64,000 nt of DNA, from sequence record OP380601.1; one strand, 5' to 3'. Of this stretch, positions 4,840 through 63,588 are shown piece by piece. The notes beneath the pieces are model-generated. The model worked only from the letters and a program-made list of their open reading frames with translations. It had not been told where the DNA came from and made no database searches. A program made the position numbers and the translations under genes. How positions within the stretch are numbered: position 1 is the stretch's first letter; each line of letters opens with the position of its first letter.

Positions 4840-4889
4840 ATGGGATCAGGCAAAATAATGCTTGATCCCATTTTTGTTTCTGATATGAT
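4840..4889 (+). terminator. terminator fused to early promoter
   Basis: ATGGGATCAGG/CTTGATCCCAT stem + TTTTGTTT; TTGATC-16-TATGAT starts in 3' arm. Confidence 0.75.
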
Positions 4890-4914
4890 GGTGTCTATGA
4901 CGAAGGAGAAAGTT

Positions 4915-5205
4915 ATGAAAATCCAATTTATCAATGAAGACGTTCGGAAAGTTTTGGAAACTCACGGTAAATCCCTAGCTGGCCGAAACGAATGGCTTAT
5001 CGATCTCCCAAAAAGTTCAAACTTTATAATCATACACATGTCCGGTAATCCCCTTCGTGAAATAGATAATGCAGAAGTGGTTAGCTGGTCACTCAATGGT
5101 CGGGATGTTTATGAAGTGATTAAGGAGATCCACCAAGACGATTATCGTCAGACTTACATGGATATGCTCCATGTTATGATCAGCCCAATGTTGGAGCGAG
5201 TATAA
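4915..5205 (+). CDS. hypothetical protein
   Basis: AAGGAG SD before ATG 4915. Confidence 0.75.
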   Translation: MKIQFINEDVRKVLETHGKSLAGRNEWLIDLPKSSNFIIIHMSGNPLREIDNAEVVSWSLNGRDVYEVIKEIHQDDYRQTYMDMLHVMISPMLERV

Positions 5206-5417
5206 TGAATATTTCTGTTCTACTTGTTATTGCAAAATGTATGATTCATGGTGTATCATCTGGAAATACAGGAAAATATAAATGGGTTGGTACATTGTCA
5301 ATAACCAGTCGTGGTCTTGTTATCAACTACTGTATGGGTAGTAAGTGGAAAACTATGATGGTTACTAATTTGGGCCTTTACAAAAATATCAAATCCGGAA
5401 TATGGGTTATCTCATGA
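5205..5417 (+). CDS. hypothetical protein
   Basis: Coupled ORF. Confidence 0.6.
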   Translation: MNISVLLVIAKCMIHGVSSGNTGKYKWVGTLSITSRGLVINYCMGSKWKTMMVTNLGLYKNIKSGIWVIS

Positions 5418-5623
5418 AATACGAATTTATCCAATTGATGTTAAGAAAAGAATACATCCAACGGGGTGTAAGAGTTGATGCAATTCAAGAGATCCTAAAT
5501 TCTCCGACAATTATTCCAGATAATATTAGACAAGCGTATCTGGAAGAGGTAGAATTTCTTCAGGGTGAAATGGCGGCATTGGTTGATGTAAATGTTAATA
5601 TTGACATACACTTTAAGGAGTAA
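5414..5623 (+). CDS. hypothetical protein
   Basis: ATGA-coupled ORF. Confidence 0.65.
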   Translation: MKYEFIQLMLRKEYIQRGVRVDAIQEILNSPTIIPDNIRQAYLEEVEFLQGEMAALVDVNVNIDIHFKE

Positions 5624-5628
5624 TAATT

Positions 5629-5988
5629 ATGATCTCTCGTTTTAATTATGACCGAAATAATGGTGTGGATAAACTAATTAACAAAGCAAAGAAAGCAATT
5701 CGTAAAGTTCAAGAAAATAACTTTTATCGGGCGGTCGAGTCAATAGAAAAAGTTCACAAATCTACAATTGCACAATCACTGAAGTTAATCAGGAAAGAAC
5801 ATCTATCAGATATAGAAGTTTCAGTAATCAATATTGAGAAGGGTGTTCCTCGGGTTGAATATAATTTTAAAATTAATGGTGAAAATGTATTGTCCATGAT
5901 ATTTCATGGGTCCGAACGTGGTGTAGTCTATGTTAATGCGGTAGTTGGCTATAATTCTGTAATATCTGCTATAAAGGAAAATGAATAG
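5629..5988 (+). CDS. hypothetical protein
   Basis: AAGGAG SD. Confidence 0.75.
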   Translation: MISRFNYDRNNGVDKLINKAKKAIRKVQENNFYRAVESIEKVHKSTIAQSLKLIRKEHLSDIEVSVINIEKGVPRVEYNFKINGENVLSMIFHGSERGVVYVNAVVGYNSVISAIKENE

Positions 5989-6217
5989 TATGAAAAGTTA
6001 TATTAAAATTTGGTGCGAGTATGACATTTGTGGCCCATTCGGTGGAAACAACAATGAACAAGTTTTGGTTATTGATCACGATGAACATATTGTAGATCGT
6101 GAAGCTATAAATGAGATCGTAGAAAAATACGTTATTGATATGTCGGGTTGTAGTAAAGAAGAAATCGACGGATTGTGGACTTGGAGTTTTATTGGGGTGA
6201 TGGAGATCCAACTGTGA
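5981..6217 (+). CDS. hypothetical protein
   Basis: AAGGA SD, coupled. Confidence 0.7.
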   Translation: MNSMKSYIKIWCEYDICGPFGGNNNEQVLVIDHDEHIVDREAINEIVEKYVIDMSGCSKEEIDGLWTWSFIGVMEIQL

Positions 6218-6219
6218 AT

Positions 6220-6789
6220 ATGAATAATCTATATCGTAAAAAGCCGGTAGTCGTTGAGGCCATCCAATGGAACTCCCCAGATATAAACGGACGACCTATG
6301 TTGGCTCGATATTGTAATCATCATCCAATGGTACGACCTACCGATTATATGGAGATCTTTGATCTTCTGGGTACGTCTGGATGTAGTTCTGACGAAAAAA
6401 TGTGGACTTGGGAAGTGATGGGAGTTATTGATACTCTGGAAGGTAAGCACGTAGTAACACCCGGCGACTTTATTGTTAAAGGTGTTAACGGAGAATACTA
6501 CCCATGTAAACCTGATATTTTTTGGAAAACTTACGAAAAAGTTAATATGTTGGAAGATAATGATATGAAAAATTATGTACAATTCGTTTACAGTCAAGAA
6601 GGTATTGACGAACTTAAAACCTTTGCGGGTGATGCAATAGACGGGTTCCGAAAATATCGGAGTCCAAATGCTATTGGTATGTGTTTGCTCAACGGAAATC
6701 TTGTTGTCGAAAGTGATTATGTTGTCAAGACCGACAATGGGTTTATTGCCGTTAATGAGAAAGAAGCTAAACGTCTCGGATACGTATGA
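6220..6789 (+). CDS. conserved phage protein (RKKPVVVEA / YPCKPDIF family) with degenerate second repeat
   Basis: RKKPVVVEAIQW, IDTLEG, PGDFIVKGVNGEYYPCKPDIFWKTYE. Confidence 0.75.
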   Translation: MNNLYRKKPVVVEAIQWNSPDINGRPMLARYCNHHPMVRPTDYMEIFDLLGTSGCSSDEKMWTWEVMGVIDTLEGKHVVTPGDFIVKGVNGEYYPCKPDIFWKTYEKVNMLEDNDMKNYVQFVYSQEGIDELKTFAGDAIDGFRKYRSPNAIGMCLLNGNLVVESDYVVKTDNGFIAVNEKEAKRLGYV

Positions 6790-8032: not shown

Positions 8033-8048
8033 AAACGCTTTGTATGAG

Positions 8049-8114
8049 TTAGTTTCAAATGCAATCAAAGTATAAAGTTCTATAATATATTAATAGAAAC
8101 TTTATAATTAGAAA
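8049..8114 (+). repeat. 66-bp AT-rich palindromic element, copy 1
   Basis: 63/66 identical to 47133-47198. Confidence 0.9.
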
Positions 8115-9564: not shown

Positions 9565-9601
9565 TTGACACATACATGTGGGTATGAGATACTACCCACA
9601 T
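9565..9601 (+). promoter_or_regulatory. early promoter with stem around -10
   Basis: TTGACA-17-GATACT; ATGTGGGTA-TGAGATAC-TACCCACAT. Confidence 0.85.
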
Positions 9602-11187: not shown

Positions 11188-11384
11188 TTAGCTTTATCTT
11201 GATGTTGATGTCGATTTACGTTATTGTATATTCTGTCTTGATTTTGAAAGGTTGTCATAAAAAATACTCACTACTCTGGCCTTTGGTTGCGTTTTGGGTA
11301 GTGGTCACTCTTATTCAGATTTGGATCGAAATGATTTGGGTAAAAATTCTGGATTTTAAAAATTATATTAGTAAAATTCGTTGA
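11184..11384 (+). CDS. small membrane protein
   Basis: Two hydrophobic helices. Confidence 0.65.
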   Translation: MISFILMLMSIYVIVYSVLILKGCHKKYSLLWPLVAFWVVVTLIQIWIEMIWVKILDFKNYISKIR

Positions 11385-11416
11385 CATATGATTGTGGGTA
11401 TGAGATATTACCCACA
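11381..11416 (+). promoter_or_regulatory. early promoter with stem around -10
   Basis: TTGACA-17-GATATT; TGTGGGTA-TGAGATAT-TACCCACA. Confidence 0.85.
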
Positions 11417-16667: not shown

Positions 16668-16672
16668 TTTCA

Positions 16673-16708
16673 AAAGGGCTTGTCATACGATAGGCCCTTT
16701 GTTATGCT
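16673..16708 (+). terminator. terminator fused to early promoter
   Basis: AAAGGGCTTGTC-ATAC-GATAGGCCCTTT+GTT (G-U pairs); TTGTCA-17-TATGCT. Confidence 0.8.
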
Positions 16709-16740
16709 ATCCGTATACGAAATGATGTTAAGAGGTTATT

Positions 16741-17517: not shown

Positions 17518-17734
17518 TACCATCATTAACAGTCAGATTGGATTTGCGATCATCACAGCAATTTATCTATGTGCAATTATCTACAATGGGGTATCTACAT
17601 ATTACGAAACCCGTTCATCAAGTAAGCTGGAAACGTTCTTTATGTACACCATGCACATTCTAGTGTGTGGGCTATGTGTGAAGGGTTATATGATAATTCT
17701 AAGTTTTGTTGATTTCAGTAAAATGATTGGTTGA
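17510..17734 (+). CDS. small membrane protein
   Basis: Two hydrophobic helices. Confidence 0.7.
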   Translation: MIDTIINSQIGFAIITAIYLCAIIYNGVSTYYETRSSSKLETFFMYTMHILVCGLCVKGYMIILSFVDFSKMIG

Positions 17735-17780
17735 CATACAAGACTGATATTGAGATACTAATTCCGTAGACAGAAACCCC
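17731..17780 (+). promoter_or_regulatory. early promoter
   Basis: TTGACA-17-GATACT, GTAGACAGAAACCCC leader. Confidence 0.85.
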
Positions 17781-18075: not shown

Positions 18076-18294
18076 ATGACTGCTCAAATCTTCTTCTCTA
18101 CCCGTGCTAATGCTCGTCAGGCTTCTTTCGGTAAGATGACTGATAATGGCTCTACTGCTCCTAAGCGTTGGGCTCGGAGTGTTGAGGTAACTTCCACTGG
18201 CAACAAAACCCTGTCGGTCGGTAAAGGTTCCCGCAACAACGGTTACAAGGCCGTTACCATCATCACCAAGAAAACCAAAACTCTGGTTCACTAA
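18076..18294 (+). CDS. small basic protein, paralogue of 42515
   Basis: FFSTRANARQASFGKMTDNG..KRWAR..ITKKTKTLVH. Confidence 0.85.
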   Translation: MTAQIFFSTRANARQASFGKMTDNGSTAPKRWARSVEVTSTGNKTLSVGKGSRNNGYKAVTIITKKTKTLVH

Positions 18295-19755: not shown

Positions 19756-19782
19756 ACCTACATCAAAACGGTGGAGGTTCCC

Positions 19783-19965
19783 ATGGTAACTTATAAAGTA
19801 AACGAGTTTGGTGGTTTGAAAAATTGTAAAGACGTTCAAGAAAAGGTTAGAGAATTATTCAAATCCGGTATTGCGAAAGAATCGATTACGGTTATCATGG
19901 AACAAGGTAATATCGATGTTACCACATGGCAAGTCACTCAAGCGTTGAAGCGTGTTAAACAATAA
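19783..19965 (+). CDS. hypothetical protein
   Basis: GGAGG SD. Confidence 0.7.
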   Translation: MVTYKVNEFGGLKNCKDVQEKVRELFKSGIAKESITVIMEQGNIDVTTWQVTQALKRVKQ

Positions 19966-19978
19966 AAAGGAAATGACC

Positions 19979-20230
19979 ATGAAAGTTTGTCTCTTCTATA
20001 AAAAGCTCCCGCAAAAGTTCTGGGTTGTTGAGGTTGAATGGAAAGGGTCGTCAGTTTATGATATTCAAACCGCTGACTGTATAAATCGGAATCCTCATAG
20101 CTGCGTAACCTTTCAGCCAATGGAACTGTCGGAAAATCAAGCCAAAAAAGTTATGAAATTCCTTGAGGATAAATTCTCGGTTGCTGGGGCTTCTATTGTT
20201 CGGGAAGAAGACTATCAGTTTCATCAATAA
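19979..20230 (+). CDS. hypothetical protein
   Basis: AAGGA SD. Confidence 0.75.
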   Translation: MKVCLFYKKLPQKFWVVEVEWKGSSVYDIQTADCINRNPHSCVTFQPMELSENQAKKVMKFLEDKFSVAGASIVREEDYQFHQ

Positions 20231-20236
20231 TAGTGC

Positions 20237-20265
20237 TTGTCATTAGATAGACCCTTTGCTATTAT
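20237..20265 (+). promoter_or_regulatory. early promoter
   Basis: TTGTCA-17-TATTAT, ATCGAAA leader. Confidence 0.75.
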
Positions 20266-20292
20266 ACCCATATCGAAATAAGAGGATATCCC

Positions 20293-20676: not shown

Positions 20677-20725
20677 GTTTATGTGTGATAAAATTCGTCA
20701 CTAGGTGTTTGATGAGGTATAAGAT

Positions 20726-20965
20726 ATGAAAAACATTGATATTATGAAATTGATGGGTTATCAACTGTTCAACTCAAAAGAAGAATTCGATGGGGTGATT
20801 GGTGTCTGACAAGAAAGTTATATTTATTATGGAGATGAAGATTTCCCTTGCTGGATGAAGCAGGTAGAAGAAATTGATGTATCATCCAATATTAAAACTA
20901 TTTTGGTATTTGACCGTATCGAGATGGAAACCGTAGAGATGATGGATAAAATTATTAAAGTTTAG
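20726..20965 (+). pseudogene. gene interrupted by in-frame TGA at 20807-20809
   Basis: GAGG SD; both halves resemble 17275..17517. Confidence 0.65.
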
Positions 20966-20993
20966 TTGACTCCATAATCCATTCTGGTAAGAT
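20966..20993 (+). promoter_or_regulatory. early promoter
   Basis: TTGACT-16-(TGG)TAAGAT; CCATTCTGGTAA shared with 45060 and 58778. Confidence 0.7.
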
Positions 20994-21023
20994 AATCATA
21001 TACCAACTGAGAAGGAATACAGA

Positions 21024-21881: not shown

Positions 21882-21889
21882 GGGATATC

Positions 21890-22081
21890 GTGGAAAATAA
21901 AAAACTTGTAGAACTAGTTGCCTACCAGACCAGTTGTTTGATATCATCAATGGGTCATCGAGAAGCAGTAGTTGCTTTGGGTAAATGGATTGAAGTAACT
22001 CCCTACGTAACCGATGAAGAAATTGATTATCTTATGAGTTTGGTATATCAGGAGAAAACATCATGGCTAAAGGTAAAGTAA
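21890..22081 (+). CDS. hypothetical protein
   Basis: GTG start, AGGGA SD. Confidence 0.6.
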   Translation: MENKKLVELVAYQTSCLISSMGHREAVVALGKWIEVTPYVTDEEIDYLMSLVYQEKTSWLKVK

Positions 22082-22899: not shown

Positions 22900-23047
22900 A
22901 ACGTCACTCGGTGTAACGAGGGGTTTTTCATAGTTTTGCACCATTATAGTGCAATGTACATTTATCCCTCTATCCCGCGCTGGTACTGGGTTTCTTTTAA
23001 CATTTATCCAAATATTTTTAAACAGCAACTAATTTTGTATAAATCAA

Positions 23048-23103
23048 AATGTTTTAATTCATAAACCGAATGTTTGATTCATGAAAGAAAATGTTTGATT
23101 CAT
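23048..23103 (+). repeat. three direct repeats at 21-bp spacing
   Basis: AATGTTT(TA/G)ATTCAT at 23048, 23069, 23090. Confidence 0.75.
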
Positions 23104-23123
23104 TTTTATCGTTGGTGTACTAT
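23095..23123 (+). promoter_or_regulatory. early promoter overlapping third repeat
   Basis: TTGATT-17-TACTAT. Confidence 0.55.
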
Positions 23124-23150
23124 ATCTTTACTGAATTAGGACAATAAATT

Positions 23151-24466: not shown

Positions 24467-24527
24467 ATCCGGTTATGCGATACTCGTTTTGTCGATTGGG
24501 ACACAACTTTTTGAGGAATGCATCATG
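24456..24527 (+). promoter_or_regulatory. early promoter/leader/SD cassette, copy 1
   Basis: TTGACC-17-GATACT; 24473-24527 matches 24974-25028 at 54/55. Confidence 0.9.
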
Positions 24528-24719
24528 AAAATACTATGTGAGTTTAAATACGTTCCTAACAATACCAAGTTTTATGTTCTTCGTTACGTAGGTGCGCCGG
24601 TATATGATAGTATTAGTTTCTTCAAAAAAGATTCTAATATCTGTAAGGATGTATATCAAGAATGGTACTCTCCTGTTGAGTTTAGTGATGACCATCCTTG
24701 TTGGTATTTTGAGGGTTGA
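24525..24719 (+). CDS. hypothetical protein, 64 aa
   Basis: Start within cassette after GAGG SD. Confidence 0.75.
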   Translation: MKILCEFKYVPNNTKFYVLRYVGAPVYDSISFFKKDSNICKDVYQEWYSPVEFSDDHPCWYFEG

Positions 24720-24965: not shown

Positions 24966-25028
24966 GTTTATCATTATGCGATACTCGTTTTGTCGATTGG
25001 GACACAACTTTTTGAGGAATGTATCATG
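24957..25028 (+). promoter_or_regulatory. early promoter/leader/SD cassette, copy 2
   Basis: TTGATT-17-GATACT; 55-bp direct repeat. Confidence 0.9.
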
Positions 25029-25880: not shown

Positions 25881-25897
25881 TTGGAAAATAATTTCAA

Positions 25898-25933
25898 AAA
25901 GGGCTTGTCTTCGGATAAGCCCTTTGTTATTAT
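25898..25933 (+). terminator. cUUCGg terminator fused to early promoter
   Basis: AAAGGGCTTGTC-TTCG-GATAAGCCCTTT+GTT; TTGTCT-17-TATTAT. Confidence 0.85.
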
Positions 25934-25969
25934 ACCTACATCGAAACGAAACACGGAAAGGAAAACGAA

Positions 25970-41336: not shown

Positions 41337-41356
41337 TCGAAACAACAGGATTTACT

Positions 41357-41898: not shown

Positions 41899-41913
41899 TA
41901 GGAGATTTGAATT

Positions 41914-42222: not shown

Positions 42223-42232
42223 GGAAATGACT

Positions 42233-42442: not shown

Positions 42443-42471
42443 TTGACTACTAAACCAGATAATGCGATACT
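42443..42471 (+). promoter_or_regulatory. early promoter
   Basis: TTGACT-17-GATACT. Confidence 0.8.
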
Positions 42472-42514
42472 GTCCTTGTTGAAACGAAACCCCATTTTGA
42501 AAAAGGAAATTACC

Positions 42515-42736
42515 ATGACTAACGTACAAGTTTTCTTCTCTACCCGCGCCGCCGCTCGTCAAGCTTCTTTCGGTAAGATGACTGATAATGGTACTACTTC
42601 CGAAAAGCGTTGGGCTCGTACTGTAACGGCCACAAGTAACGGTAACAAAACACTGTCTATCGCTTCAGGTGTTCGTAAGAATGGTTACAAGGACGTTACC
42701 GTAATCACCAAGAAAACCAAAACTCTGGTTCATTGA
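42515..42736 (+). CDS. small basic protein, paralogue of 18076
   Basis: FFSTRAAARQASFGKMTDNG..KRWAR..ITKKTKTLVH. Confidence 0.85.
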   Translation: MTNVQVFFSTRAAARQASFGKMTDNGTTSEKRWARTVTATSNGNKTLSIASGVRKNGYKDVTVITKKTKTLVH

Positions 42737-43928: not shown

Positions 43929-44297
43929 ATGGTTTATCTAAGTGCGATGGTTGATGGTGAATATGTTGAATTGGGATATTTCACATGTACTCGCCCAAGC
44001 GATGCAATACAATACTGTATTGATTCAAATCTGGTCCCAACAACAGTAAAACATTTTGAAATTAAAGAAATTAATTCAAAAATGCTTCCTAATAACACAG
44101 ATAGAACTCTAGTCGGGGATGCTACCGTAATCGGTGAAGATCATTATAAAACATTCGATAATGGTTCCTACGAAATCACCAAAACAGTTAAACTGTCGAA
44201 TTCAATGACTTCTGAAGAAAATAACGCGATTAAAGCGTTTAAATCTCTCAGTAAGCAAGAACAAGATGCAGTTCGTAAGTTTATAGCGGGGGTATAA
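43929..44297 (+). CDS. hypothetical protein
   Basis: AAGGA SD. Confidence 0.75.
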   Translation: MVYLSAMVDGEYVELGYFTCTRPSDAIQYCIDSNLVPTTVKHFEIKEINSKMLPNNTDRTLVGDATVIGEDHYKTFDNGSYEITKTVKLSNSMTSEENNAIKAFKSLSKQEQDAVRKFIAGV

Positions 44298-44308
44298 ACC
44301 CCCTTCAT
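44288..44308 (+). terminator. weak terminator-like hairpin
   Basis: GGGGGT-ATAA-ACCCCC+TTCATT. Confidence 0.4.
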
Positions 44309-45135: not shown

Positions 45136-45450
45136 ATGACCATCACTATGCAATCTATTCGTGAAACTATTATGGATATTCAATCTGATCTGGTAATGGT
45201 TAACGCGAAAGTAGTTAGTGGAATCAGTTCTCCGTTTACTTTCGAAAAGACGGCCATTGATATGAAAAACCTTATGTGTATGCTTGGTCCATGTAAGTCT
45301 TCAGAATATGTAGCAAAGGCCATAGAAGAGTTGAACGAGTCATACCACGAATGCGCTGCTAACGATGGAGAGATTACTGAAAATTTCAGTATCTACATGG
45401 ATATTTGTGTTGGTAATCTTCGTGCTGCTTACATCAACTTGGGGAAATAA
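45136..45450 (+). CDS. helical protein, paralogue of 41914
   Basis: DICVGNLRAA vs DMACVNIRAA. Confidence 0.75.
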   Translation: MTITMQSIRETIMDIQSDLVMVNAKVVSGISSPFTFEKTAIDMKNLMCMLGPCKSSEYVAKAIEELNESYHECAANDGEITENFSIYMDICVGNLRAAYINLGK

Positions 45451-45452
45451 TC

Positions 45453-45755
45453 ATGATCATCAGTAAAATCGATAGTGCAATAAAAGTTTTCGAAAATGAA
45501 TGCAAATACCCGGGGAATGGTCATGTACTTCTTAACGATATTTTTGGGGAACTAGTTTCTTATTTCTTCGAATATAGTACATTTGCTTTTCAGGCAATTA
45601 ATCGCGCTCGGGATCTTCTTGATAAATATGAAATTCTCATAGGAGAGGCATTCGAGTTGAAGAATCATCACATACGTCAGGCATACTTTGACGTTATAGT
45701 TTCTGAACTAAAATTGATAAAAAATCTTGTAAAAGGGGTTTACATCCCTAAGTAG
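45453..45755 (+). CDS. helical hypothetical protein
   Basis: GGGG SD. Confidence 0.7.
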   Translation: MIISKIDSAIKVFENECKYPGNGHVLLNDIFGELVSYFFEYSTFAFQAINRARDLLDKYEILIGEAFELKNHHIRQAYFDVIVSELKLIKNLVKGVYIPK

Positions 45756-45782
45756 AAATGAGATACTATCCCTGTTGAGACA
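45739..45782 (+). promoter_or_regulatory. early promoter, chimeric cassette
   Basis: (G)TTTACA-17-GATACT; right arm TATCCCT as at 39314 but with no matching left arm. Confidence 0.75.
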
Positions 45783-46679: not shown

Positions 46680-47136
46680 GAAAATTAAGAAAGACCAAAT
46701 CGCCCTTCGTAAATCCGAAGAACGTACAACCCACGTTGGTAAAATGAAAATCAACGCCCTGACTACTCTGATTGGCGAAGCTTCTCCTTCCGGTCACAAT
46801 TCAGTAGTTTCTGATGAAGATGTACAGAAAATTGTTCGAAAGTTCGTGAAGAATCTAGATGAAACTCTGGAACAACTCGGGGTTGATACCACAATTACCA
46901 GCTTTGAAAAAGCCGTTGATGTGTTGAAAGAATGCTCTAAAATCTCCATGCTTCTAATCGAGCGCCAGATGTATATGAGTTACCTGCCACAAGTATTTGA
47001 TGAAACCCAAATCAAAGAAGTGGTTGATTCTATGCAGGGCGCAAATATCGGTCAAATCATGGGAGCCTGCAAGAAAGCCGCTACCTCTAAAGGTATGATG
47101 TTTGATGGTTCCCTAGTCAAAAAAGTGATTGGTTAG
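46669..47136 (+). CDS. YqeY/GatB-like protein
   Basis: LEKIKKDQIALRK..LTTLIGE..SDEDVQKIVRK..YLPQ..NIGQIMG. Confidence 0.8.
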   Translation: MLLEKIKKDQIALRKSEERTTHVGKMKINALTTLIGEASPSGHNSVVSDEDVQKIVRKFVKNLDETLEQLGVDTTITSFEKAVDVLKECSKISMLLIERQMYMSYLPQVFDETQIKEVVDSMQGANIGQIMGACKKAATSKGMMFDGSLVKKVIG

Positions 47137-47198
47137 TTTCAAGTGTAATCAAAGTATAAAGTTCTATAATATATTAATAGAGACTTTATAATTAGAAA
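47133..47198 (+). repeat. 66-bp AT-rich palindromic element, copy 2
   Basis: 63/66 identical to 8049-8114. Confidence 0.9.
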
Positions 47199-51161: not shown

Positions 51162-51455
51162 ATGAGCAATAAGATTGAAGTCCTTAAAGATATTGTGGCA
51201 ACTGCATCGATTCTAATCAAATTTGGTAGAGATGATATTCTAGATACACAACGAGGGTTTGTTGACTTTCTATCAGAGGCTGGATTTACCACCCCATCAG
51301 GAAAACCTTTAACTATTCAGAACTTTCGTGTAATGGTGAAAAGCCTTAAACCTTCCCAAATTAAAGATATATTCCAAGAATTTGACGCCGGTCGAATGTA
51401 CGATATGATTGATTGTATGATATCTCAACATCCAGACTTGGAACTAGAAAGTTAA
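51162..51455 (+). CDS. asiA: anti-sigma70 factor
   Basis: ASILIKFGRDDI..FVDFLSEAG..G.PL..NFRVMV matches T4 AsiA. Confidence 0.9.
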   Translation: MSNKIEVLKDIVATASILIKFGRDDILDTQRGFVDFLSEAGFTTPSGKPLTIQNFRVMVKSLKPSQIKDIFQEFDAGRMYDMIDCMISQHPDLELES

Positions 51456-51456
51456 C

Positions 51457-51491
51457 AAAAAAGCCTACTCCGTTATGGAGTAGGCTTTTTT
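51457..51491. terminator. bidirectional terminator between asiA and e
   Basis: A6-GCCTACTCC-GTTAT-GGAGTAGGC-T6. Confidence 0.9.
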
Positions 51492-51494
51492 GTT

Positions 51495-52014: not shown

Positions 52015-52034
52015 AATGGGACTTTCGCCCCATT
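52015..52034 (-). promoter_or_regulatory. GAAA-tetraloop hairpin between fibre gene and e
   Basis: AATGGGGC-GAAA-GTCCCATT on minus strand, no U tract. Confidence 0.5.
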
Positions 52035-52037
52035 CTA

Positions 52038-55000
52038 TTAACTAACACGCTGCCACAAAGAAGTATTCCAACGAGCATATGTTCCTTCAAGAACATAACC
52101 CATCAATCGCCAGTTACCCGGAGGTACGGATGATGATACGTTATTACCTTCAGCAGAACACCAACGCAAGTTGCTACCAGCAGTAACAAATCCCGGACCT
52201 CTTTCTCCGATATTAACAGCGGTAGTCATCATTGCGAATTGCCCTATTGCGGAATAACTAGCCCCTGCAAGTTGGTTACCCGCAGCTTGGGCAGCAGGTG
52301 GAGGGTTGTTGGCTGAATACACCCGAGCACCACCATCATATACACCAGTACCGAAAATGGTTGAGGCGCAAGTTATTGGCTGATAAAAATAGAATCCACT
52401 TCCAGCATTCGTAGTAAAGTGAGAATATCCAGAGTTCTTTGGACCCATTTCAAGATACGTGCTACCGAGATTTATCCTAAATTGACCCGCAGTAGATGGA
52501 ACAATAGTAACGTTACCACTAACAGTACCACCAGACAGAGCCAATGCCCCAACAGCAGCAGCCGTAGGTGGGCGCAACGAATCGTAAGTCAATGCCCATG
52601 CAGACCAATCGGTATAATATGTTCGAATGTATCTAACCCCCGTAGCATAAACCGTATATTCTTGGATTATTCCAGCAGCTTTCGTAATAACCAATGCCCC
52701 CGCTTGTGCTGTTGGGTAATTGTTGGCTGTGCTGGCATTTGAATTTAAGTCCTGATAGTAATATCCTGGGGTTTGGATATTATTCAAGTTTGCAGCAGTA
52801 CCAAGATGGATAGCGTTAGCCGGTGTCTGGGTTGACAGCGAACTCTCAAGATAATCTTTCCGCACCAGTGAACCCGCAGTTGTTCCTTGGTTAACCAGAG
52901 AAATTGGGTCTTTACTTAGTGATATACTATCTGCACCCACTCTTATATAAGCTGTATGACCATAGCTATAAAGGAATGTATCAGCAGACCCAGCACCACC
53001 TTGACCAACATACCAACGACTTGCACCTGTTGAGTCAACCCCAATAAGATATTGTGCTGACGTTACTCCTAATGTTGTACTTTTCAGTGCAAGAGGTAGG
53101 CTGGTTGATGACTGAACTATTAGCTGACCAGTCATAGTATCGCCAGATTTTGATACCTGTTGTGCTATTAGACCATCAACGTAATCTTTGCGGGTTAAAG
53201 AATTTGCTTCAGTACCCTGAGCAGCAGATAGCAATACTTTTGGAGCAGTCAAGTTACCAGTCATGGTATCGCCGGTCTTTGTAACCTGTTTAGCACACTC
53301 AGAAATTACAAAGTCTCTTCTAGCCGCCGAGTTAACTTCAGTACCTTGAACCGCAGATAGCAATACTTTTGGAGTGGTTAGATTACCAGTCATGGTATCG
53401 CCAGTTTTACTAACTTGCTTTGCCAACTCAGCATTTATTTCAGATGTGGTCAAAGTACCAATATCGGCAGGAGATGGTTTATTAGCAGTTGTGTATATAT
53501 CAGCAGTACCATGTTTCAGATTACCAGCACCACGAATAATTGTGTTGTTGTTATCTACACCCACGGTAAGATTGCCATCGTTTATGTTTCTGGAAATCAT
53601 AAACATGTTTACAAACGATCCACCGATTATATTATATAGTCCAGAAGTAACCCCATTATCAGCCAAATATAATCTACGTTCAGACCTTCTAACACCAACT
53701 TGTGGTTCAGCAGTAGTTCCAGCGTCTACAATTAGGTTACCGGTCATAGTATCACCGGCTATATTAACGACACCTAATTCTGTTGAAGTTGGTTTATATC
53801 CTTCGTGATATATCTTTTGGTTAGAATATTCAAGACTTCCGTTATCTTTAAGTTGCAATAACTTAGAAGATATACCATTTCGGAAAAATACATCAGTAGT
53901 CCCAGTAGATATAGTTAACTTATCTATCCCATCTCTAACGCTATGAAAGTTATTGGCAATACGAAGTGCCCCCGTCATGGTATCGCCAGTTTTAGATACC
54001 TTAGTACCTACTTCCGCATCTACATAATCTTTACGGGTTGAACTGTTTACCAAACTACTTTGTGTGGTATTCTGCAAAAAGTCATCGGCGGTAACTCTAC
54101 CAGTATTTATTTGTACCTTTCTAGCCGCATGGGTAAACTCAGCTCCCATTTCTCTATTAATAGCTAAAATTGAACTATCGGATACAGTACCATCAGCCCT
54201 ACGAAGTCTAGACGAGAAATATAGTGATCCATCATATTCACCCGCAGTTGCGGTATTGGTTACCATTCCTAAAATTCTAGATAGTTGATCCCCTGAGTGT
54301 GGGTCGTATCTATTTGCAGAACCTGCACGGAAAGATATTTCACCTACGGTATAATACGTCCCCGGGGCAACTGTATCCCTATACTTCTCTTTGGTATAAG
54401 ATACATAAGGATATACAGAATCGTCAGCTCCTACAGTATTTCTACGAAGGATACCAGTTCTATATGTGTTTACTGTTTCCCATTGACCAGAAGGAACCCA
54501 ATCAGACCACCCATCAGTTGCATTTATCCAAGTACGAGTGAATTCTCTTTGGTTTGTTGCACTTTGAGCGGTAGCCCAATACATAAACTTCTGAATAGTT
54601 AGGTTATCAAAAGCCCGTTGATATACTTGTAATATACCTGTATGTCCGGTTGATGTAGCTGTGTTATCAACTCCATTTGCCCAAGAACCTTCAACCGTGA
54701 AATTCCCGTTAGTCTTAGCCAAGTTGAAATCACGAACGTTTCCAGTGATTGTAAGAGCGTTTGGAGCGTCACCAACACCAAGACCCATACCACCAACCGG
54801 TTGCTTGTTAGAAGTTGAATACAACTCAAACCAAGGCTGCCAAACATTGATATGTTGACGACGAACAAACACCCTATCAGACCCATAGGTAAAGAACATC
54901 TGAGTATTGGCACCATTACCCCAACGAGTTACAAGTAATGTAGAACCACTAGGTCCAGTACCATGTGGAGTGTTTACTGTATTAGCAAATATGCCATAGT

Positions 55001-55784
55001 TACCCGGCATGGTTGCGTTATTACAATCATCATCAGTTGGGCGATCATAAATAGCCATTGCACTAATGTCTTGTGGAGTAGGCATATTCCCACGATGGAG
55101 AATATCATAGTTTACCCCACCCTGAAGAACTTGAGGTTGTATGCCAGATGCCATACTAATTCTGAATTGAGACAAAGGTGTACCAAACCATCCAGACAAC
55201 ATCATCTTTTGATCTGCAATATCTCTATCTTTTTTACCGGATTGAAAATATCCAATAGCTCCAGAAACTACGATTCTTTGTGCGTATGTGTCGTCCATAT
55301 TTTCAAGACCGGAATTTGAGGTTGCTGTAATTTTCCCTTGTGAAGAGAAATTACCAGTAGTAGCTAAATTTCCATTTACCGTATCCCCATCTCTATTAAC
55401 TACGTTAAATGGATGGTTGTCCAATTTAGTTTTATCTACCGCACTCATCGAACCCGCAGCAGTTGGAGTTGCCGGATCTATAGATACAGTCGGATTTATT
55501 CCGGTAGTTACTCTAATAGGTGTAGTTCCACTAACTGATTTAACTGATGTGGAATCTTTACCATCTACGTATGATTTGTTTGTGGCATCATTAGCCAATA
55601 CAGGAGTAGGAACTGTAGCACCTGTAGTAAAATCTTTTTTTCCGGCGATAGTCTGATTATTTTTGCTATCTACCAGCTCCATATCCTTGTAGAATATTTT
55701 CCCATCTTGAGGGGAAACCGGTAGGTTTGTTTGTGTCCAAACCAGACTTCCCCCAGCAGTAGATGAACTCTTCAATTCTGCCAT
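52038..55784 (-). CDS. 36: long tail fibre, gp36-like N-terminus, pyocin-knob-like domains
   Basis: MAELKSSSTAGGSLVWTQTNLP resembles T4 gp36; repeated KTGDTMTG fibre motifs; three knob-like domains. Confidence 0.8.
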   Translation of the reverse strand: MAELKSSSTAGGSLVWTQTNLPVSPQDGKIFYKDMELVDSKNNQTIAGKKDFTTGATVPTPVLANDATNKSYVDGKDSTSVKSVSGTTPIRVTTGINPTVSIDPATPTAAGSMSAVDKTKLDNHPFNVVNRDGDTVNGNLATTGNFSSQGKITATSNSGLENMDDTYAQRIVVSGAIGYFQSGKKDRDIADQKMMLSGWFGTPLSQFRISMASGIQPQVLQGGVNYDILHRGNMPTPQDISAMAIYDRPTDDDCNNATMPGNYGIFANTVNTPHGTGPSGSTLLVTRWGNGANTQMFFTYGSDRVFVRRQHINVWQPWFELYSTSNKQPVGGMGLGVGDAPNALTITGNVRDFNLAKTNGNFTVEGSWANGVDNTATSTGHTGILQVYQRAFDNLTIQKFMYWATAQSATNQREFTRTWINATDGWSDWVPSGQWETVNTYRTGILRRNTVGADDSVYPYVSYTKEKYRDTVAPGTYYTVGEISFRAGSANRYDPHSGDQLSRILGMVTNTATAGEYDGSLYFSSRLRRADGTVSDSSILAINREMGAEFTHAARKVQINTGRVTADDFLQNTTQSSLVNSSTRKDYVDAEVGTKVSKTGDTMTGALRIANNFHSVRDGIDKLTISTGTTDVFFRNGISSKLLQLKDNGSLEYSNQKIYHEGYKPTSTELGVVNIAGDTMTGNLIVDAGTTAEPQVGVRRSERRLYLADNGVTSGLYNIIGGSFVNMFMISRNINDGNLTVGVDNNNTIIRGAGNLKHGTADIYTTANKPSPADIGTLTTSEINAELAKQVSKTGDTMTGNLTTPKVLLSAVQGTEVNSAARRDFVISECAKQVTKTGDTMTGNLTAPKVLLSAAQGTEANSLTRKDYVDGLIAQQVSKSGDTMTGQLIVQSSTSLPLALKSTTLGVTSAQYLIGVDSTGASRWYVGQGGAGSADTFLYSYGHTAYIRVGADSISLSKDPISLVNQGTTAGSLVRKDYLESSLSTQTPANAIHLGTAANLNNIQTPGYYYQDLNSNASTANNYPTAQAGALVITKAAGIIQEYTVYATGVRYIRTYYTDWSAWALTYDSLRPPTAAAVGALALSGGTVSGNVTIVPSTAGQFRINLGSTYLEMGPKNSGYSHFTTNAGSGFYFYQPITCASTIFGTGVYDGGARVYSANNPPPAAQAAGNQLAGASYSAIGQFAMMTTAVNIGERGPGFVTAGSNLRWCSAEGNNVSSSVPPGNWRLMGYVLEGTYARWNTSLWQRVS
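53131..53420 (-). repeat. 129-bp (43-aa) tandem repeat in fibre gene
   Basis: GTCAT.GTATCGCC units at 53131, 53260, 53389. Confidence 0.85.
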
Positions 55785-55821: not shown

Positions 55822-55829
55822 TATTTAGG
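55822..55829 (-). promoter_or_regulatory. late promoter CCTAAATA
   Basis: Upstream of fibre gene. Confidence 0.8.
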
Positions 55830-55833
55830 TATT

Positions 55834-55861
55834 AAAAAAGGCTCCATTAAGGAGCCTTTTT
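55834..55861 (-). terminator. terminator after spanins
   Basis: A6-GGCTCC-ATTAA-GGAGCC-T5. Confidence 0.85.
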
Positions 55862-56143
55862 ACATTGTGGTTCATTTAATTCTTTTCTATAAGTACATAA
55901 CATTCGATTTTGAGAGTCTATATAAACTCCAATTTTCTCCAACCAAGCCCTATATCTTAAACTGTCTTCATATGTCATACCAACAAACGTTGTATCACCT
56001 TCTTTTATTACAGTCCACTTAGGAACATACGTTTTAACTGCTACTGGTCTATTTGGATGGAATGTTAATTTAGTTTCCGGTATCGGTTTTGAAGAACATG
56101 CAACTAATACAGAAAACATTAAGCCGATTATAATTAATCTCAT
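55847..56143 (-). CDS. pseT.2: o-spanin lipoprotein (Rz1/pseT.2-like)
   Basis: LVA-C lipobox, HP..P motif, overlaps i-spanin stop. Confidence 0.8.
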   Translation of the reverse strand: MRLIIIGLMFSVLVACSSKPIPETKLTFHPNRPVAVKTYVPKWTVIKEGDTTFVGMTYEDSLRYRAWLEKIGVYIDSQNRMLCTYRKELNEPQCKKAP

Positions 56144-59405: not shown

Positions 59406-59632
59406 GATGTTTCCTTAATTCCGTACATTGTGAAAATAATAAATACAATAACAAATAATATTATTTCTGGTGAATTTATTTCTTTTGCTCTATGAAGAAT
59501 AGAAAATTCTGATAAGACAGCAACCCACATTACAAAAAACCATCCATCCCCATCAACCCACGATTTATTCAGATAAAATGGAATGCTTAAAAATATCAAC
59601 ACGATAGAGACTATATATAATATATCAATCAT
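59402..59632 (-). CDS. membrane protein
   Basis: Three hydrophobic segments. Confidence 0.7.
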   Translation of the reverse strand: MIDILYIVSIVLIFLSIPFYLNKSWVDGDGWFFVMWVAVLSEFSILHRAKEINSPEIILFVIVFIIFTMYGIKETS

Positions 59633-59643
59633 AAGTTTTCTTC

Positions 59644-60411: not shown

Positions 60412-60440
60412 ATACTATCATAATATTTTATAGTAGTCAA
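60412..60440 (-). promoter_or_regulatory. early promoter abutting terminator
   Basis: TTGACT-17-(TGA)TAGTAT. Confidence 0.75.
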
Positions 60441-60441
60441 C

Positions 60442-60470
60442 AAAAAAGTCCCCATTATGGGGACTTTTTT
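60442..60470 (-). terminator. terminator after tk
   Basis: AAAAAAGTCCCCA-TTA-TGGGGACTTTTTT. Confidence 0.9.
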
Positions 60471-61047
60471 AATAAGAGTGTGGCTTTCCAGAAGCCCAAT
60501 GTTTACGGCATACTGAAATATATCGGTCATTCCCACCAATACATACTTGATCTCCAATTACCTTATTTCCATTTTCATCAATTCTCATGTTCATGATAGC
60601 TTTTTTACCACACCAACAGATAGTTTTATGTTCTACTTTCTTTTCTGCTAGAACAATCAATGCCGCAGAACCTTCAAATAGTTCTCCATTTGAATCAGAC
60701 AAAAGTCCATAACACATAACGGGTACATCATACCAATCAACTATATTACTCAACTGTTTTACTTGTTTCTTAGACAAGAATTGCGCTTCATCTACCAGAA
60801 TACAATCAACATGCATACCAATATTGTAACTAAGAAATAAATCTAATAAGTGTTCGTCCGGACCGACCATAATAGAAGGACGTTTCAGCCCGATTCGAGA
60901 TGAAACAAAATCTCCATCACGATCATCTATTTTAGGTTTCAATACTAAAACCTTCATTTCACGTTCTTCGTAATTATGGGCAACTTGTAATAGACTTGTG
61001 GATTTACCTGAGTTCATAGCAGAGTAATGGAAATGGAGAGATGCCAT
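60469..61047 (-). CDS. tk: thymidine kinase
   Basis: YSAMNSGKST, ILVDEAQF, CYGL.SD..GELFEGS, ICWCG, YISVCRKH. Confidence 0.95.
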   Translation of the reverse strand: MASLHFHYSAMNSGKSTSLLQVAHNYEEREMKVLVLKPKIDDRDGDFVSSRIGLKRPSIMVGPDEHLLDLFLSYNIGMHVDCILVDEAQFLSKKQVKQLSNIVDWYDVPVMCYGLLSDSNGELFEGSAALIVLAEKKVEHKTICWCGKKAIMNMRIDENGNKVIGDQVCIGGNDRYISVCRKHWASGKPHSY

Positions 61048-61502: not shown

Positions 61503-61510
61503 TATTTAGG
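61503..61510 (-). promoter_or_regulatory. late promoter CCTAAATA
   Basis: Upstream of ParB-like gene. Confidence 0.75.
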
Positions 61511-61513
61511 ATC

Positions 61514-61535
61514 AAAAAAGGCTCCCGAAGGAGCC
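61514..61535 (-). terminator. cUUCGg terminator after hoc
   Basis: GGCTCC-TTCG-GGAGCC-T6 on minus strand. Confidence 0.9.
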
Positions 61536-61539
61536 TCTA

Positions 61540-62334
61540 TTATTTCAAATCACTAACTTTCAAAAGGCGACCATTTCGGCTTTCCAGAAGGAAAACTTCA
61601 CCATAGTCATTAAATGCTTTAACAATTGTCTCAACTTCTTTTTTGTATTTCATAGTAGAGTAATCATCAAACCAATCAGATTTAGCTTTGATTTCATCAA
61701 TTACCCAATATCCAATCCAAGTAAATGAAGCGTTCCGATAACTTAATGGAACAACCGCCCACTCTGCAACCAATTCAACTGCTTCAGTTACACTCAATTC
61801 ACCAACATCAAACGTGGTAGAAGATTGGACTACCGATTCTTTTAGAAACGATTGAGATACGCCAAAAATAACACCATCATCTGAGATATCTACCAAATGA
61901 GTATAGCCGAGTGAAGTTTCACCATCTATATTCTCTACACCACGAACCCATTGAGTAGAAACATCAAACATATCGGTTATTGATGGATCTGTAGTTACTG
62001 GCGTATATTTAATTTCACCTTTGGTAACTACAAAAAGGGCGGAATCTCCAACAACTTTATTGACAACAGGTACAGGGTCTATTACTTCCGGTATATGTTC
62101 AACACACCCAAGCTCAAACGTATCAATTACATCATCTTCTTCAGCCTTAGAAGCTGTAACTGTATAAACCCCTACATCTGTATCTGTGAAGTTATTAAGT
62201 GTTTTTGTTTTACCAGATCCAGATATTACTGAAGAATCTTTTTTCCATACAAAAGTATATCCTTCGGAAGTACCACCCGTGACGGTTGAAGTCAAAGTAG
62301 TGGACTTACCTTTTACAATATAAACATAAGCCAT
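61540..62334 (-). CDS. hoc: head outer capsid protein with Ig-like domains
   Basis: Ig-like YxWxKD..D.GVYTV; C-terminal PL.YRNASFTWIGYWV..ESRNG capsid-binding motif. Confidence 0.9.
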   Translation of the reverse strand: MAYVYIVKGKSTTLTSTVTGGTSEGYTFVWKKDSSVISGSGKTKTLNNFTDTDVGVYTVTASKAEEDDVIDTFELGCVEHIPEVIDPVPVVNKVVGDSALFVVTKGEIKYTPVTTDPSITDMFDVSTQWVRGVENIDGETSLGYTHLVDISDDGVIFGVSQSFLKESVVQSSTTFDVGELSVTEAVELVAEWAVVPLSYRNASFTWIGYWVIDEIKAKSDWFDDYSTMKYKKEVETIVKAFNDYGEVFLLESRNGRLLKVSDLK

Positions 62335-62365
62335 TTTAATTTTCCTCTTATTTTATGTTCATTGG

Positions 62366-62373
62366 TATTTAGG
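62366..62373 (-). promoter_or_regulatory. late promoter CCTAAATA
   Basis: Upstream of hoc. Confidence 0.8.
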
Positions 62374-62378
62374 GAAAA

Positions 62379-63227
62379 TTATTTCTTCATTATCATAGCC
62401 CAAGTTTCCGGATTTGGAATATAATCAGCAATTTTACCAACAATGGCTTTATCCAATTCAGTTGCCTTCATCGGGGCTTTACCTTGTTGTTTCACCCTAA
62501 TATAGTTGGCTTCTTTGATGTAACTACCACCTTTACCAGACTTGGCAAGTTCCGAGTCAACCCCCACTTGGTTAAAGGCGATATACCAATCACCATCCGC
62601 ATAGTTCTTAGCACCTTCACCCATCGCCATTAGGTTTTTAAAGGTCATTGCTGCACCTTCATGGGTAGATACTAGAATTTCAAGAGGGACTGTACGACTA
62701 CGCTTATTATTCTGATCGATAGCAACATCAACTTTGTTCATAACCCATACAATATGAACGTTTTCTTTTTCATATCCAAGATCCCTAACTTGTTTTGCAA
62801 TTTGAGCCATTTTACCCATATCTTTCAAGGTAACGTCAAATATAATATTGGGTTTCCGTCCTTCTGGTGCGGCAAGAACCCCATCAAACACCCGCTTATC
62901 CATTTTCTTGGTAGTCTTATATTCAGACGCAAGTAGATTATGGAGAGTAGATACGTTCTCTGGCTTCTTAAGATCAAACTGAGTAATATCGTGACCGGTT
63001 TCTCGCTTGATACGAGCAGAAAGCTTTGTAGACGCCATAGCCAGTTCTTTAACGCGATCAACATCAAGAACAATACCGTCCATACCTACTAATTTCGATG
63101 TTACAAAGCCCTTACCGCTACCGGCACCGCCCGCAAGAATAAGAACGTTTCCAAATTTCGGGTATGCTTTTTTACCAAATACCATCAATTTTTCTTCCAA
63201 CTTTACAAATTCACGAAATGTTTTCAT
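62379..63227 (-). CDS. P-loop kinase (zeta-toxin/AAA_33-like) with capsid-targeting-like N-terminus
   Basis: MKTFREFVKLEE; LAGGAGSGKG Walker A; DVDRVKE; IIFDVT; RxRxVP. Confidence 0.75.
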   Translation of the reverse strand: MKTFREFVKLEEKLMVFGKKAYPKFGNVLILAGGAGSGKGFVTSKLVGMDGIVLDVDRVKELAMASTKLSARIKRETGHDITQFDLKKPENVSTLHNLLASEYKTTKKMDKRVFDGVLAAPEGRKPNIIFDVTLKDMGKMAQIAKQVRDLGYEKENVHIVWVMNKVDVAIDQNNKRSRTVPLEILVSTHEGAAMTFKNLMAMGEGAKNYADGDWYIAFNQVGVDSELAKSGKGGSYIKEANYIRVKQQGKAPMKATELDKAIVGKIADYIPNPETWAMIMKK

Positions 63228-63255
63228 TTTATTTTCCTTTTAGGTTGTTACTTAG

Positions 63256-63263
63256 TATTTAGG
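63256..63263 (-). promoter_or_regulatory. late promoter CCTAAATA
   Basis: Upstream of kinase gene. Confidence 0.75.
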
Positions 63264-63510
63264 CATCAACCCAATAAGAAAACTCCTCTATGGTTTTGAA
63301 AACCATACTTTTCTTATCTTTAAACGGAGTAACTACAATACCACTCTTCATAACCCCAATTACATATTCACATTCCATTACACACGGTTCATCAATAAAA
63401 CACGCCTTTGTGTAATAAGTTTTTATCTTTGTATATGAACCCATATCAAAAACTTTAACAACTTCATAAGAATCTTTACAAATATCAATCACACGTTGTA
63501 CATCATACAT
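63259..63510 (-). CDS. hypothetical protein
   Basis: ORF after early promoter. Confidence 0.65.
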   Translation of the reverse strand: MYDVQRVIDICKDSYEVVKVFDMGSYTKIKTYYTKACFIDEPCVMECEYVIGVMKSGIVVTPFKDKKSMVFKTIEEFSYWVDA

Positions 63511-63546
63511 ACATATTATTTTATTCCTTATTCTTATAATTTCTTT

Positions 63547-63588
63547 ACTATACACAAATAAAAATCCCCCGTCAATAGACGAGGGATT
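63547..63588 (-). terminator. terminator fused to early promoter
   Basis: AATCCCTCGTC-TATT-GACGGGGGATT+TTTATTT; TTGACG-17-TATAGT. Confidence 0.75.

Follow-up and report, generated by a model that had tools for sequence, protein, structure and literature searches.

Features of the analysed region

The window analysed here comprises bases 1-64000 (64,000 nucleotides, nt) of the genome of Aeromonas phage avDM6 (OP380601.1), a T4-like phage of the Straboviridae (Emmerichvirinae, Ishigurovirus) with Aeromonas phage 65 as a relative, and the elements of interest are intergenic cassettes in which a hairpin and a promoter occupy the same bases or abut. A 3.7-kb piece of the window agrees fully with that record (100%), coordinates included. 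Positions 1-51455 carry 143 small plus-strand genes, nearly all of them annotated as hypothetical and the last one being asiA, while the genes from 51495 onwards are located on the minus strand and include a lysozyme-like gene, a tail-fibre gene and hoc. The lengths of the intergenic gaps are bimodal, being either at most about 22 nt or 40-90 nt, and the sense strand has an excess of G (GC skew about +0.17). A tRNA scan of the window found none, and a search of the whole window against Rfam at gathering thresholds gave no match, the cassette elements included.

Standard promoter and terminator scans of the plus-strand part returned counts that were not above those of shuffles. As these scans alone were unable to show enrichment, a separate census was made of every co-directional gap of at least 26 nt, in which the best promoter and the best hairpin per gap were recorded; z-scores for folding were calculated against 200 shuffles.

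Composite hairpin/promoter cassettes

A preliminary description of this DNA had listed nine sites at which terminator hairpins hold or adjoin promoter boxes. Each of the nine has a stable hairpin containing or abutting such boxes, with folding energies of -16.4 to -20.9 kcal/mol and z-scores of -4.2 to -6.2 (Table 1), and at all nine none of the 200 shuffles (0/200) folded as well. Elements that had been missed are hairpins without a U tract and with the -10 box in the loop (9576, 11393 and 39297), and terminators abutting late promoters (61513-61542 and 55831-55865).

These cassettes are mostly not new: they match the published 'promoter-early stem-loop' (PeSL) class of T4-like phages. A PeSL is defined by a sigma70-like early promoter with an AT-rich upstream region and by a stem-loop that is mostly located between the -35 and -10 boxes or over the -10 box; it ends at its 3' side with a Shine-Dalgarno sequence (SD) and an ATG, and PeSLs are concentrated in hyperplastic regions (PMC2839356). 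For phage RB49, both promoter and terminator activity of PeSLs were shown by lacZ fusions, and one PeSL stem-loop lowered the expression of lacZ to the same extent as the rrnB T1 terminator did (Arbiol et al. 2010, PMC2839356). The consensus for the PeSLs of nt-1/KVP40 consists of the stem A3-4G3-loop-C3T3-4 and the promoter TTGYVH-N17-TAWWAT (Comeau, Arbiol and Krisch 2014, PMC4122927). Judged by their sequence, the avDM6 elements are quite probably PeSL-type composite regulatory cassettes, with predicted activities in termination, initiation and recombination.

Like the PeSLs of RB49/phi1 (PMC2839356), the avDM6 elements have an AT-rich upstream region, an SD and ATG at the 3' side, G-T pairs in the stem and, as a weak trend, an association with indels; the stems of RB49, in contrast, are polyG/polyC, and activity and mini-circles were shown experimentally for RB49, whereas the avDM6 elements are known from sequence. 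The PeSLs of nt-1/KVP40 and of PST/T4 (PMC4122927) are the same composite terminator/early-promoter cassettes, placed upstream of ORFans in hyperplastic regions. The avDM6 elements at 16673 and 25898 fit the stem and promoter consensus of nt-1/KVP40, and region 25885-25975 matches KVP40-type phages at 77-79% identity by blastn. To that description avDM6 adds family A, with its 3' arm formed by a GATACT -10 box, and a class of cassettes that lack a U tract; that study dealt with other host and phage genera than those of avDM6 (Ishigurovirus), and it describes a middle-promoter form (PmSL) but no late-promoter versions. Lambdoid morons are likewise accessory genes organized as self-contained transcription units, but, according to the contrast drawn in PMC1524935, the promoter and terminator of a moron flank its gene separately and its GC content is foreign, whereas in avDM6 the terminator of one unit and the promoter of the next overlap as a single element and their composition is that of the genome. 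In the literature searched, PeSLs are discussed for T4-like phages only; the late-promoter versions and the cross-family distribution described below are modest additions to the known PeSLs.

Table 1. Cassettes, hairpins and promoters of the avDM6 window; z, z-score against shuffles.
Feature	Position	Strand	Details
PeSL	4840-4889	+	Hairpin 4840-4871, 13-bp stem, -20.9 kcal/mol, z -5.7; T tract 4872-4881; -35 TTGATC 4862-4867 inside 3' arm, then TTTTGTTTCTGA, then extended -10 TGA-TATGAT 4884-4889
PeSL, nt-1/KVP40 type	16673-16708	+	AAAGGGC...GCCCTTT hairpin 16673-16700, -17.9 kcal/mol, z -5.1; -35 TTGTCA 16680-16685 in 5' arm; 17-nt spacer; TGT-TATGCT 16703-16708
PeSL, nt-1/KVP40 type, c(UUCG)g loop	25898-25933	+	Hairpin 25898-25925, -18.6 kcal/mol, z -6.0; -35 TTGTCT 25905-25910 in 5' arm; 17-nt spacer; TGT-TATTAT 25928-25933, then ACCTAC-ATCGAAACGAAAC
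PeSL, family A	28701-28740	+	-35 TTGACA; hairpin 28706-28732 in spacer, then CTTTGTCGAAAC; hairpin alone -15.7 kcal/mol, 41-nt segment -17.8 kcal/mol, z -4.5
PeSL, weak -35	34417-34460	+	TTGCAT 34417-34422; hairpin 34424-34452, -19.9 kcal/mol, z -4.7; -10 TAGAAT 34439-34444 straddling loop and 3' arm; tail TTGATT
PeSL, family A	41301-41340	+	-35 TTGACT; hairpin 41307-41330, UUCG loop closed by A-U, then TTTTTGTCGAAAC; hairpin alone -15.9 kcal/mol, 38-nt segment -16.6 kcal/mol, z -5.2
Terminator hairpin with late promoter in loop	56540-56567	-	-16.4 kcal/mol, z -4.2; CTAAATA 56558-56552 formed by last stem base and loop, 41 nt upstream of start codon 56517
Terminator abutting sigma70-type promoter	60412-60475	-	AAAAAAGTCCCC-ATAA-TGGGGACTTTTTT; hairpin 60441-60469, -17.5 kcal/mol, z -5.8; promoter TTGACT-17-TGA-TAGTAT, TTGACT beginning 1 nt past T tract
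PeSL	63547-63588	-	Hairpin 63563-63588, -18.1 kcal/mol, z -6.2; T tract; -35 TTGACG 63575-63570 across loop and 3' arm; -10 TATAGT 63552-63547
PeSL variant without U tract	9565-9601	+	-35 TTGACA 9565-9570; hairpin 9576-9601, -12.5 kcal/mol, z -2.8; TGA-GATACT in loop and 3' arm; repeat family D2; conserved in phage 65
PeSL variant without U tract	11381-11416	+	Paralogue of 9565, 86% identical; -12.5 kcal/mol, z -3.7
PeSL variant without U tract	39286-39323	+	-35 TTGACG; hairpin 39297-39323, -11.7 kcal/mol, z -4.7
Early promoter without hairpin, same family	17731-17759	+	TTGACA-17-TGA-GATACT
Further early promoters without hairpin	16934, 18002, 19727, 20237, 21549, 24456, 24957, 30616, 38355, 41849, 42443, 45739		
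Terminator followed by late promoter	55822-55865	-	GGCTCC-TTAAT-GGAGCC-TTTTTT, -16.6 kcal/mol, z -5.1; CTAAATA 55828-55822
Terminator followed by late promoter	61503-61542	-	c(UUCG)g-loop hairpin 61513-61542, -14.8 kcal/mol, z -2.5; CTAAATA 61509-61503, 4 nt on
Stand-alone bidirectional terminator	51454-51494	both	18-bp stem, -27.7 kcal/mol on each strand; between convergent asiA and lysozyme-like gene
Further stand-alone hairpins	772-788, 27902-27922, 44288-44303, 52015-52034		

The arrangement of the shared bases differs between the cassettes. For family A (28706 and 41307) the 3' arm, TGGGATACTC, doubles as the extended -10 box (TGGGATACT), and further copies of the 41301 cassette are found elsewhere in the genome, at 203334 and 232247. 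The GATACT -10 box and the ATCGA start of this family may resemble those of the T7 A1 promoter. The coding sequence that is annotated as starting at 4858 begins inside the hairpin/promoter of the first cassette and was probably called too far upstream: its phage 65 orthologue, 65p291, starts at an ATG after AAGGAG, equivalent to approximately position 4915 (region 4840-4917). A MotA-type middle promoter (TGCTTGA) at 4840 was considered and rejected, the distance to the -10 box being 18 nt and not 11-13 nt.

Predicted termination signals and RNA structure

A GC-rich stem followed by a U-rich tract (5-8 T in the next 9 nt) is present at 4840, 16673, 25898, 34420, 41307, 63563, 60437, 61513, 55831 and 56540. 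The hairpins begin 1-17 nt past the upstream stop codon, and the predicted transcription start (+1) is located 3' of the hairpin, so that the whole hairpin would occur only in read-through RNA coming from upstream. An SD and ATG follow 28-45 nt after the -10 box, an SD and start codon closing the cassette in every listed gap, and the 20 nt upstream of the -35 box contain 76% A+T, versus 63% at decoy matches (p = 2e-7). This architecture fits the earlier proposal that a single element stops upstream transcription and restarts it, a plausible reading that is in essence the model already published for PeSLs (PMC2839356); the part of that proposal concerned with full termination is weakened by observations discussed below. 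Sense-strand hairpins of -11 kcal/mol or lower are strongly concentrated between genes, 18 of the 39 being found in the intergenic 7.8% of the window (p = 1e-10).

Between avDM6 and phage 65 the cassettes have hardly changed (for the one at 28701, 75 of 76 nt agree), and their flanking genes are 83-92% identical. The few changes in the stems preserve pairing: at 34420 an A-U pair beside the base has become U-A, a compensatory change, and at 4840 one A-U pair has become G-U. At 39297 the 5' arm of the hairpin is not conserved in phage 65. When family A was aligned across Ishigurovirus and Ceceduovirus, both of the 5'-arm changes in the Ceceduovirus relatives were found to yield G-U pairs on the sense strand, the 3' arm being fixed because it doubles as the -10 box. 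Stems of different families have no sequence in common and keep the same register, with 98.6% of the alignment cells paired and 8 of the 9 pairs changed on both sides, a count that is partly circular, the sequences having been picked because of their folding, and that serves as a description only.

These comparisons bear on the proposal that the inverted repeats are not RNA structures at all, but DNA operators for a dimeric regulator, or cruciforms, by which the early promoters are shut off. Overlap with the -10 box or the spacer is typical of repressor sites, and family A is a near-perfect palindrome. An operator, however, accords poorly with stem sequences that are wholly different between families while the structure is kept, with G-T positions that are non-palindromic in duplex DNA, with changes in relatives that are wobble-compatible on the sense strand only, and with flanking A and T tracts, which are features of terminators. 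It accords poorly as well with the c(UUCG)g loops, since tetraloops of this type are specially stable in RNA only. We regard this explanation as very improbable. The preliminary description had argued for function at the RNA level from both G-U pairs and UUCG loops, and it is the latter, present as c(UUCG)g at 25898, at 61513 and in many relatives, that are the better sign of RNA-level selection.

Late promoters

One of the listed sites, at 56536, had been described as a terminator with a late promoter in its loop; the promoter in question is CTAAATA. This description is backed by its location in the late region and by published work on Aeromonas phage Aeh1, for which the same heptamer is given as the late promoter in the relevant passages of Nolan et al. 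(2006, PMC1524935). All five copies of CTAAATA on the minus strand of the window (5/5) are located 27-44 nt upstream of minus-strand late-region starts (chance about 4e-12), and elsewhere in the genome the heptamer is found ahead of the genes for gp9, gp13, gp15, gp20, the major capsid protein and gp24. Its placement within or directly after terminator hairpins in avDM6 goes unmentioned in the passages on Aeh1 (PMC1524935). The T4 late consensus TATAAATA was rejected as the late promoter of this phage: it has a single intergenic copy (51144), CTAAATA being used instead. Outside the window, at 81934/81944 and 127204/127212 of the avDM6 genome, divergent copies of CTAAATA overlap on opposite strands between divergent late genes.

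Distribution of the cassette among other phages

A 91-nt query consisting of the cassette at 25885-25975 matched 330 phage records. The common layout comprises an A tract, a stem with TTGAC topping its 5' arm, a UUCG loop, a T tract, TGn-TATTAT, six bases and ATCGAAACGAAAC; the closing C-G pair of c(UUCG)g is provided by TTGAC and GTCAA, and ATCGAAAC is often found at the start site. Besides Ishigurovirus, the full layout is present, with nearly the same sequence, in Schizotequatrovirus, Slopekvirus, Alcyoneusvirus and a 50-kb Yersinia myovirus. An example from the Vequintavirinae (CR9) keeps the A tract, TTG, the -10 box and the ATCGAAACGAAAC start and has no clear stem in the alignment, while a match in the Drexlerviridae has only the -10 box and the start region in common. 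Copies of the core GGTTGACTTCGGTCA(N)CC are found in T4-like, jumbo and other large phages, and viral contigs of 345-378 kb and of 108-162 kb carry the layout more than once. The start-region motif (A)TCGAAAC(GAAAC) follows about 6 nt after the -10 box of many early promoters of avDM6 (25934-25955, 28733-28745, 32985-33000, 38392-38400 and 41331-41345) and is found at promoters of unrelated phage contigs as well; the conserved leader ATCGACAGCTGAGCGAAGTTAGCCAGCGGCG comes after it in many contigs of 45-50 kb.

The core GGTTGACTTCGGTCANCC, with 17 specified bases, has 60 unique occurrences in IMG/VR, with up to six copies in 14 kb of a 348-kb contig. A -10 box at 16-18 nt from the embedded TTGACT accompanies 52 of these 60 viral occurrences (87%), versus 4 of the 117 in bacterial and archaeal genomes (3%; Fisher p = 3e-31), a contrast that shows the coupling of hairpin and promoter to be a phage-specific design. 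It is possible, though less likely than not, that the cassette is a 'standard part' common to large virulent phages of Gammaproteobacteria, and not a speciality of the T4 family. Because nearly every base of the core is functionally fixed, horizontal transfer and repeated origin are indistinguishable by the core sequence.

Repeats and breakpoints at cassettes

Whole cassettes recur as repeat families within the avDM6 genome, and a number of differences from relatives are located at them. In phage 65, the cassette at 16672-16717 forms an island of 97.8% identity between non-homologous flanks, with an extra gene to its left in avDM6 and to its right in phage 65. Phage 65 furthermore carries a 319-nt insert exactly at the 34414 cassette and a 462-nt insert between two TTGAC-N17-GATACT promoters; the replacement at 19772-20271 relative to phage 65 has a promoter on each flank, and at 39302 the homology breaks within a promoter spacer. 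Similar joints were found in metagenomes: one relative lacks 599 nt between a pair of promoter-leader repeats (41897 to 42497), in another the gene 45453-45755 is replaced by 31 nt with TTGACA (joint 45450 to 45756), and some contigs share only 41307-41343 with the window. The sequencing runs with matching sequence were wastewater, freshwater and pond metagenomes stored as contigs, with relatives at 85-99% identity; two are labelled 'RNA', of which one is flagged as probably DNA, and the RNA library of the other can contain DNA. The claim that the cassettes make each module a portable unit thus gains some support from the 16672-16717 island and the cassette-bounded metagenome indels, the excess of breakpoints at promoters being modest.

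Duplications within the window involve promoters and leaders as well. The segments 24473-24532 and 24974-25033 are a tandem duplicate of promoter plus leader (97% identical over 60 nt), and 18085-18290 and 42527-42732 belong to paralogous small genes (79% identical over 206 nt) that are each preceded by the same type of promoter-leader. Such tandem copies and paralogues suggest duplication or transposition of whole promoter-gene units.

Frequency of the fusion and alternative explanations

The window contains 27 sigma70-type promoters with a score of at least 10, all intergenic and 22-49 nt before start codons, most of which have the form TTGAC-17-TGn-GATACT or TGn-TATTAT. Eight of the 27 coincide with a structured segment (z of -2.5 or lower), and inclusion of 4862, hidden by an annotated start, and of 34425, with its weak -35 box, brings this to 10/29; the ten hairpin-bearing early promoters fold at -11.7 to -20.9 kcal/mol (z -2.8 to -6.2). 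Segments of -12 kcal/mol or lower are found at 8 of the 29 promoters, versus 2.7% of random 46-nt segments (binomial p = 7e-7). A genome-wide test for overlap also showed an enrichment: 22 hairpins overlap a same-strand promoter, versus 7.5 +/- 2.7 when the hairpins were relocated uniformly, and two hyperplastic regions contain 18 of these 22, 1-64 kb and 177-234 kb (p = 0.004). The genes neighbouring the cassettes are all annotated as hypothetical. A control for overlaps on the opposite strand gave 15 and is uninformative, since a palindromic hairpin is detected on both strands at one locus.

The fusion is non-random, but to call it systematic, as had been done, is too strong: when promoters of every class are counted, some 38 in total, about 22 are without a hairpin. 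Promoters without a hairpin have minimum free energies of -2 to -7.5 kcal/mol and z-scores of about 0, and some of them (19727 and 20237) are stem-less homologues of the hairpin-bearing promoter at 25898. Gaps with a PeSL have a median length of 64.5 nt, versus 58 nt for those with a promoter only, a difference of about 7 nt although the hairpin itself occupies 24-32 nt; this small difference indicates the extent of the space saved by the overlap.

Several observations weigh against the cassettes as coupled stop-and-restart elements. A hairpin is lacking at two thirds of the early promoters, and a hand count from the gap listing gave 16 gaps with both a hairpin and a promoter, versus about 14 expected under independence. 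The U tract is weak at 28706 and lacking at 9576, 11393 and 39297, and several U tracts are interrupted (TTTGTTAT, CTCTTTGT). Intragenic chance hairpins are richer in G-U pairs than intergenic ones, and the G-U pairs were rejected as an independent argument for RNA function: GC skew confounds them, and they are what chance would give on a G-rich sense strand. Of the indels relative to phage 65, 10 of 17 touch or adjoin an early promoter, versus 39% expected (p = 0.08), which is a weak excess. A search for an infection transcriptome of avDM6 or phage 65 found none.

The absence of a gap-level association, together with the approximately 22 promoters that have no hairpin, the 4-5 hairpins that stand without a promoter and the tightly bimodal gap sizes, would be expected if the overlaps were a by-product of compaction, with an independent terminator and an independent promoter crammed into a gap of about 60 nt upstream of the +1, and neither a selected coupling nor a cassette. 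Such an origin is unlikely in view of the stereotyped register (the -35 box topping the 5' arm, or the -10 box as 3' arm), which is conserved across genera and families, of the recurrence of entire cassettes as repeat families within the genome, and of the viral versus cellular contrast in the coupling of one and the same hairpin core to a -10 box.

The deficiencies in the U tracts bear on a different reading, in which the hairpins are not terminators but protectors of RNA 3' ends, processing sites or weak attenuators of read-through transcripts, above all in the class without a U tract (9576, 11393 and 39297, plus 186552 elsewhere in the genome). That class has no T-rich tail and is still conserved in phage 65 and recurs as a repeat family, and the authors of the PeSL studies themselves use the term 'terminator/attenuator' (PMC2839356). 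Most of the other hairpins, on the other hand, are built like classic intrinsic terminators, with an A tract, a GC stem and a T tract, and the reduction of lacZ expression by the RB49 stem-loop to the level obtained with rrnB T1 (PMC2839356) likewise argues against it. We consider this reading rather unlikely, though less so than compaction; given the three hairpins without a U tract and the interrupted tracts, attenuation is as likely as full termination at the PeSL-type cassettes.

Other repeats and long intergenic gaps

A dispersed repeat of about 65 nt (GTTAGTTTCAAATGCAATCAAAGTATAAAGTTCTATAATATATTAATAGAAACTTTATAATTAGAAA), with an internal palindrome and TATAAT-like boxes, is present at 8048-8114 and 47132-47198 (96% identical). 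Five further copies are located elsewhere in the genome, at 78492, 78634 (inverted), 121503, 145432 and 188339, all copies occurring in unusually long gaps and in either orientation. The minus-strand tail-fibre-like gene 52038-55784 contains repeats with a 129-nt period (43 aa) at 53116-53994; the C-terminal 59% of its product shares 84% identity with gp36 of phage 65, whereas the remainder diverges. Long unannotated gaps (181-347 nt) were found at 20677-21023, 21882-22062, 22900-23150 and 59406-59643, some with short ATG-initiated frames; the gap at 22900-23150 is AT-rich with repeated ATGTTTGATTCAT motifs.

Proposed function and significance

Under the PeSL interpretation, a cassette of approximately 40-65 bp between two small early genes would provide a strong early promoter of the host sigma70 type, composed of an A/T-rich upstream region, a TTGAC-type -35 box, a 16-18 nt spacer, and an extended -10 box (TGn-GATACT or TGn-TATTAT), and followed by the conserved start region (A)TCGAAAC, an SD and an ATG. 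The same bases hold a GC-rich inverted repeat, in which either the -35 box tops the 5' arm or the repeat fills the spacer with the -10 box as its 3' arm, and a T-rich spacer or discriminator would double as the U tract. A polymerase arriving from the upstream gene would transcribe hairpin and U tract and would terminate or be attenuated, while the embedded promoter, starting about 7 nt after its -10 box and thus 3' of the hairpin, would leave its own RNA unaffected. In this manner each small gene may obtain its own immediate-early transcript, with no build-up of read-through and a saving of about 25 nt of spacer per junction. In the late-gene part of the window, the same logic would apply with the late promoter CTAAATA. 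As they are repeated and conserved, the cassettes may also act as homology patches for the gain, loss and swapping of gene cassettes.

The avDM6 window is one more clear case of two opposing signals sharing the same bases in a T4-like phage, an arrangement by which an accessory gene would become a separate transcription unit while taking up hardly any extra sequence, and it supports the published idea that such cassettes are joints for the shuffling of accessory genes. In practical terms, the cassettes mark true gene starts for annotation and may serve in engineering as ready-made insulated promoter/terminator parts. The contrast between viral and cellular occurrences suggests that this class of elements is wider than the searched literature states. 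If the module of about 45 bp has spread horizontally between unrelated families, and did not arise by convergence, PeSL-type shuffling would operate across families; the late-promoter versions, if true, would extend the principle to a phage-encoded sigma factor.

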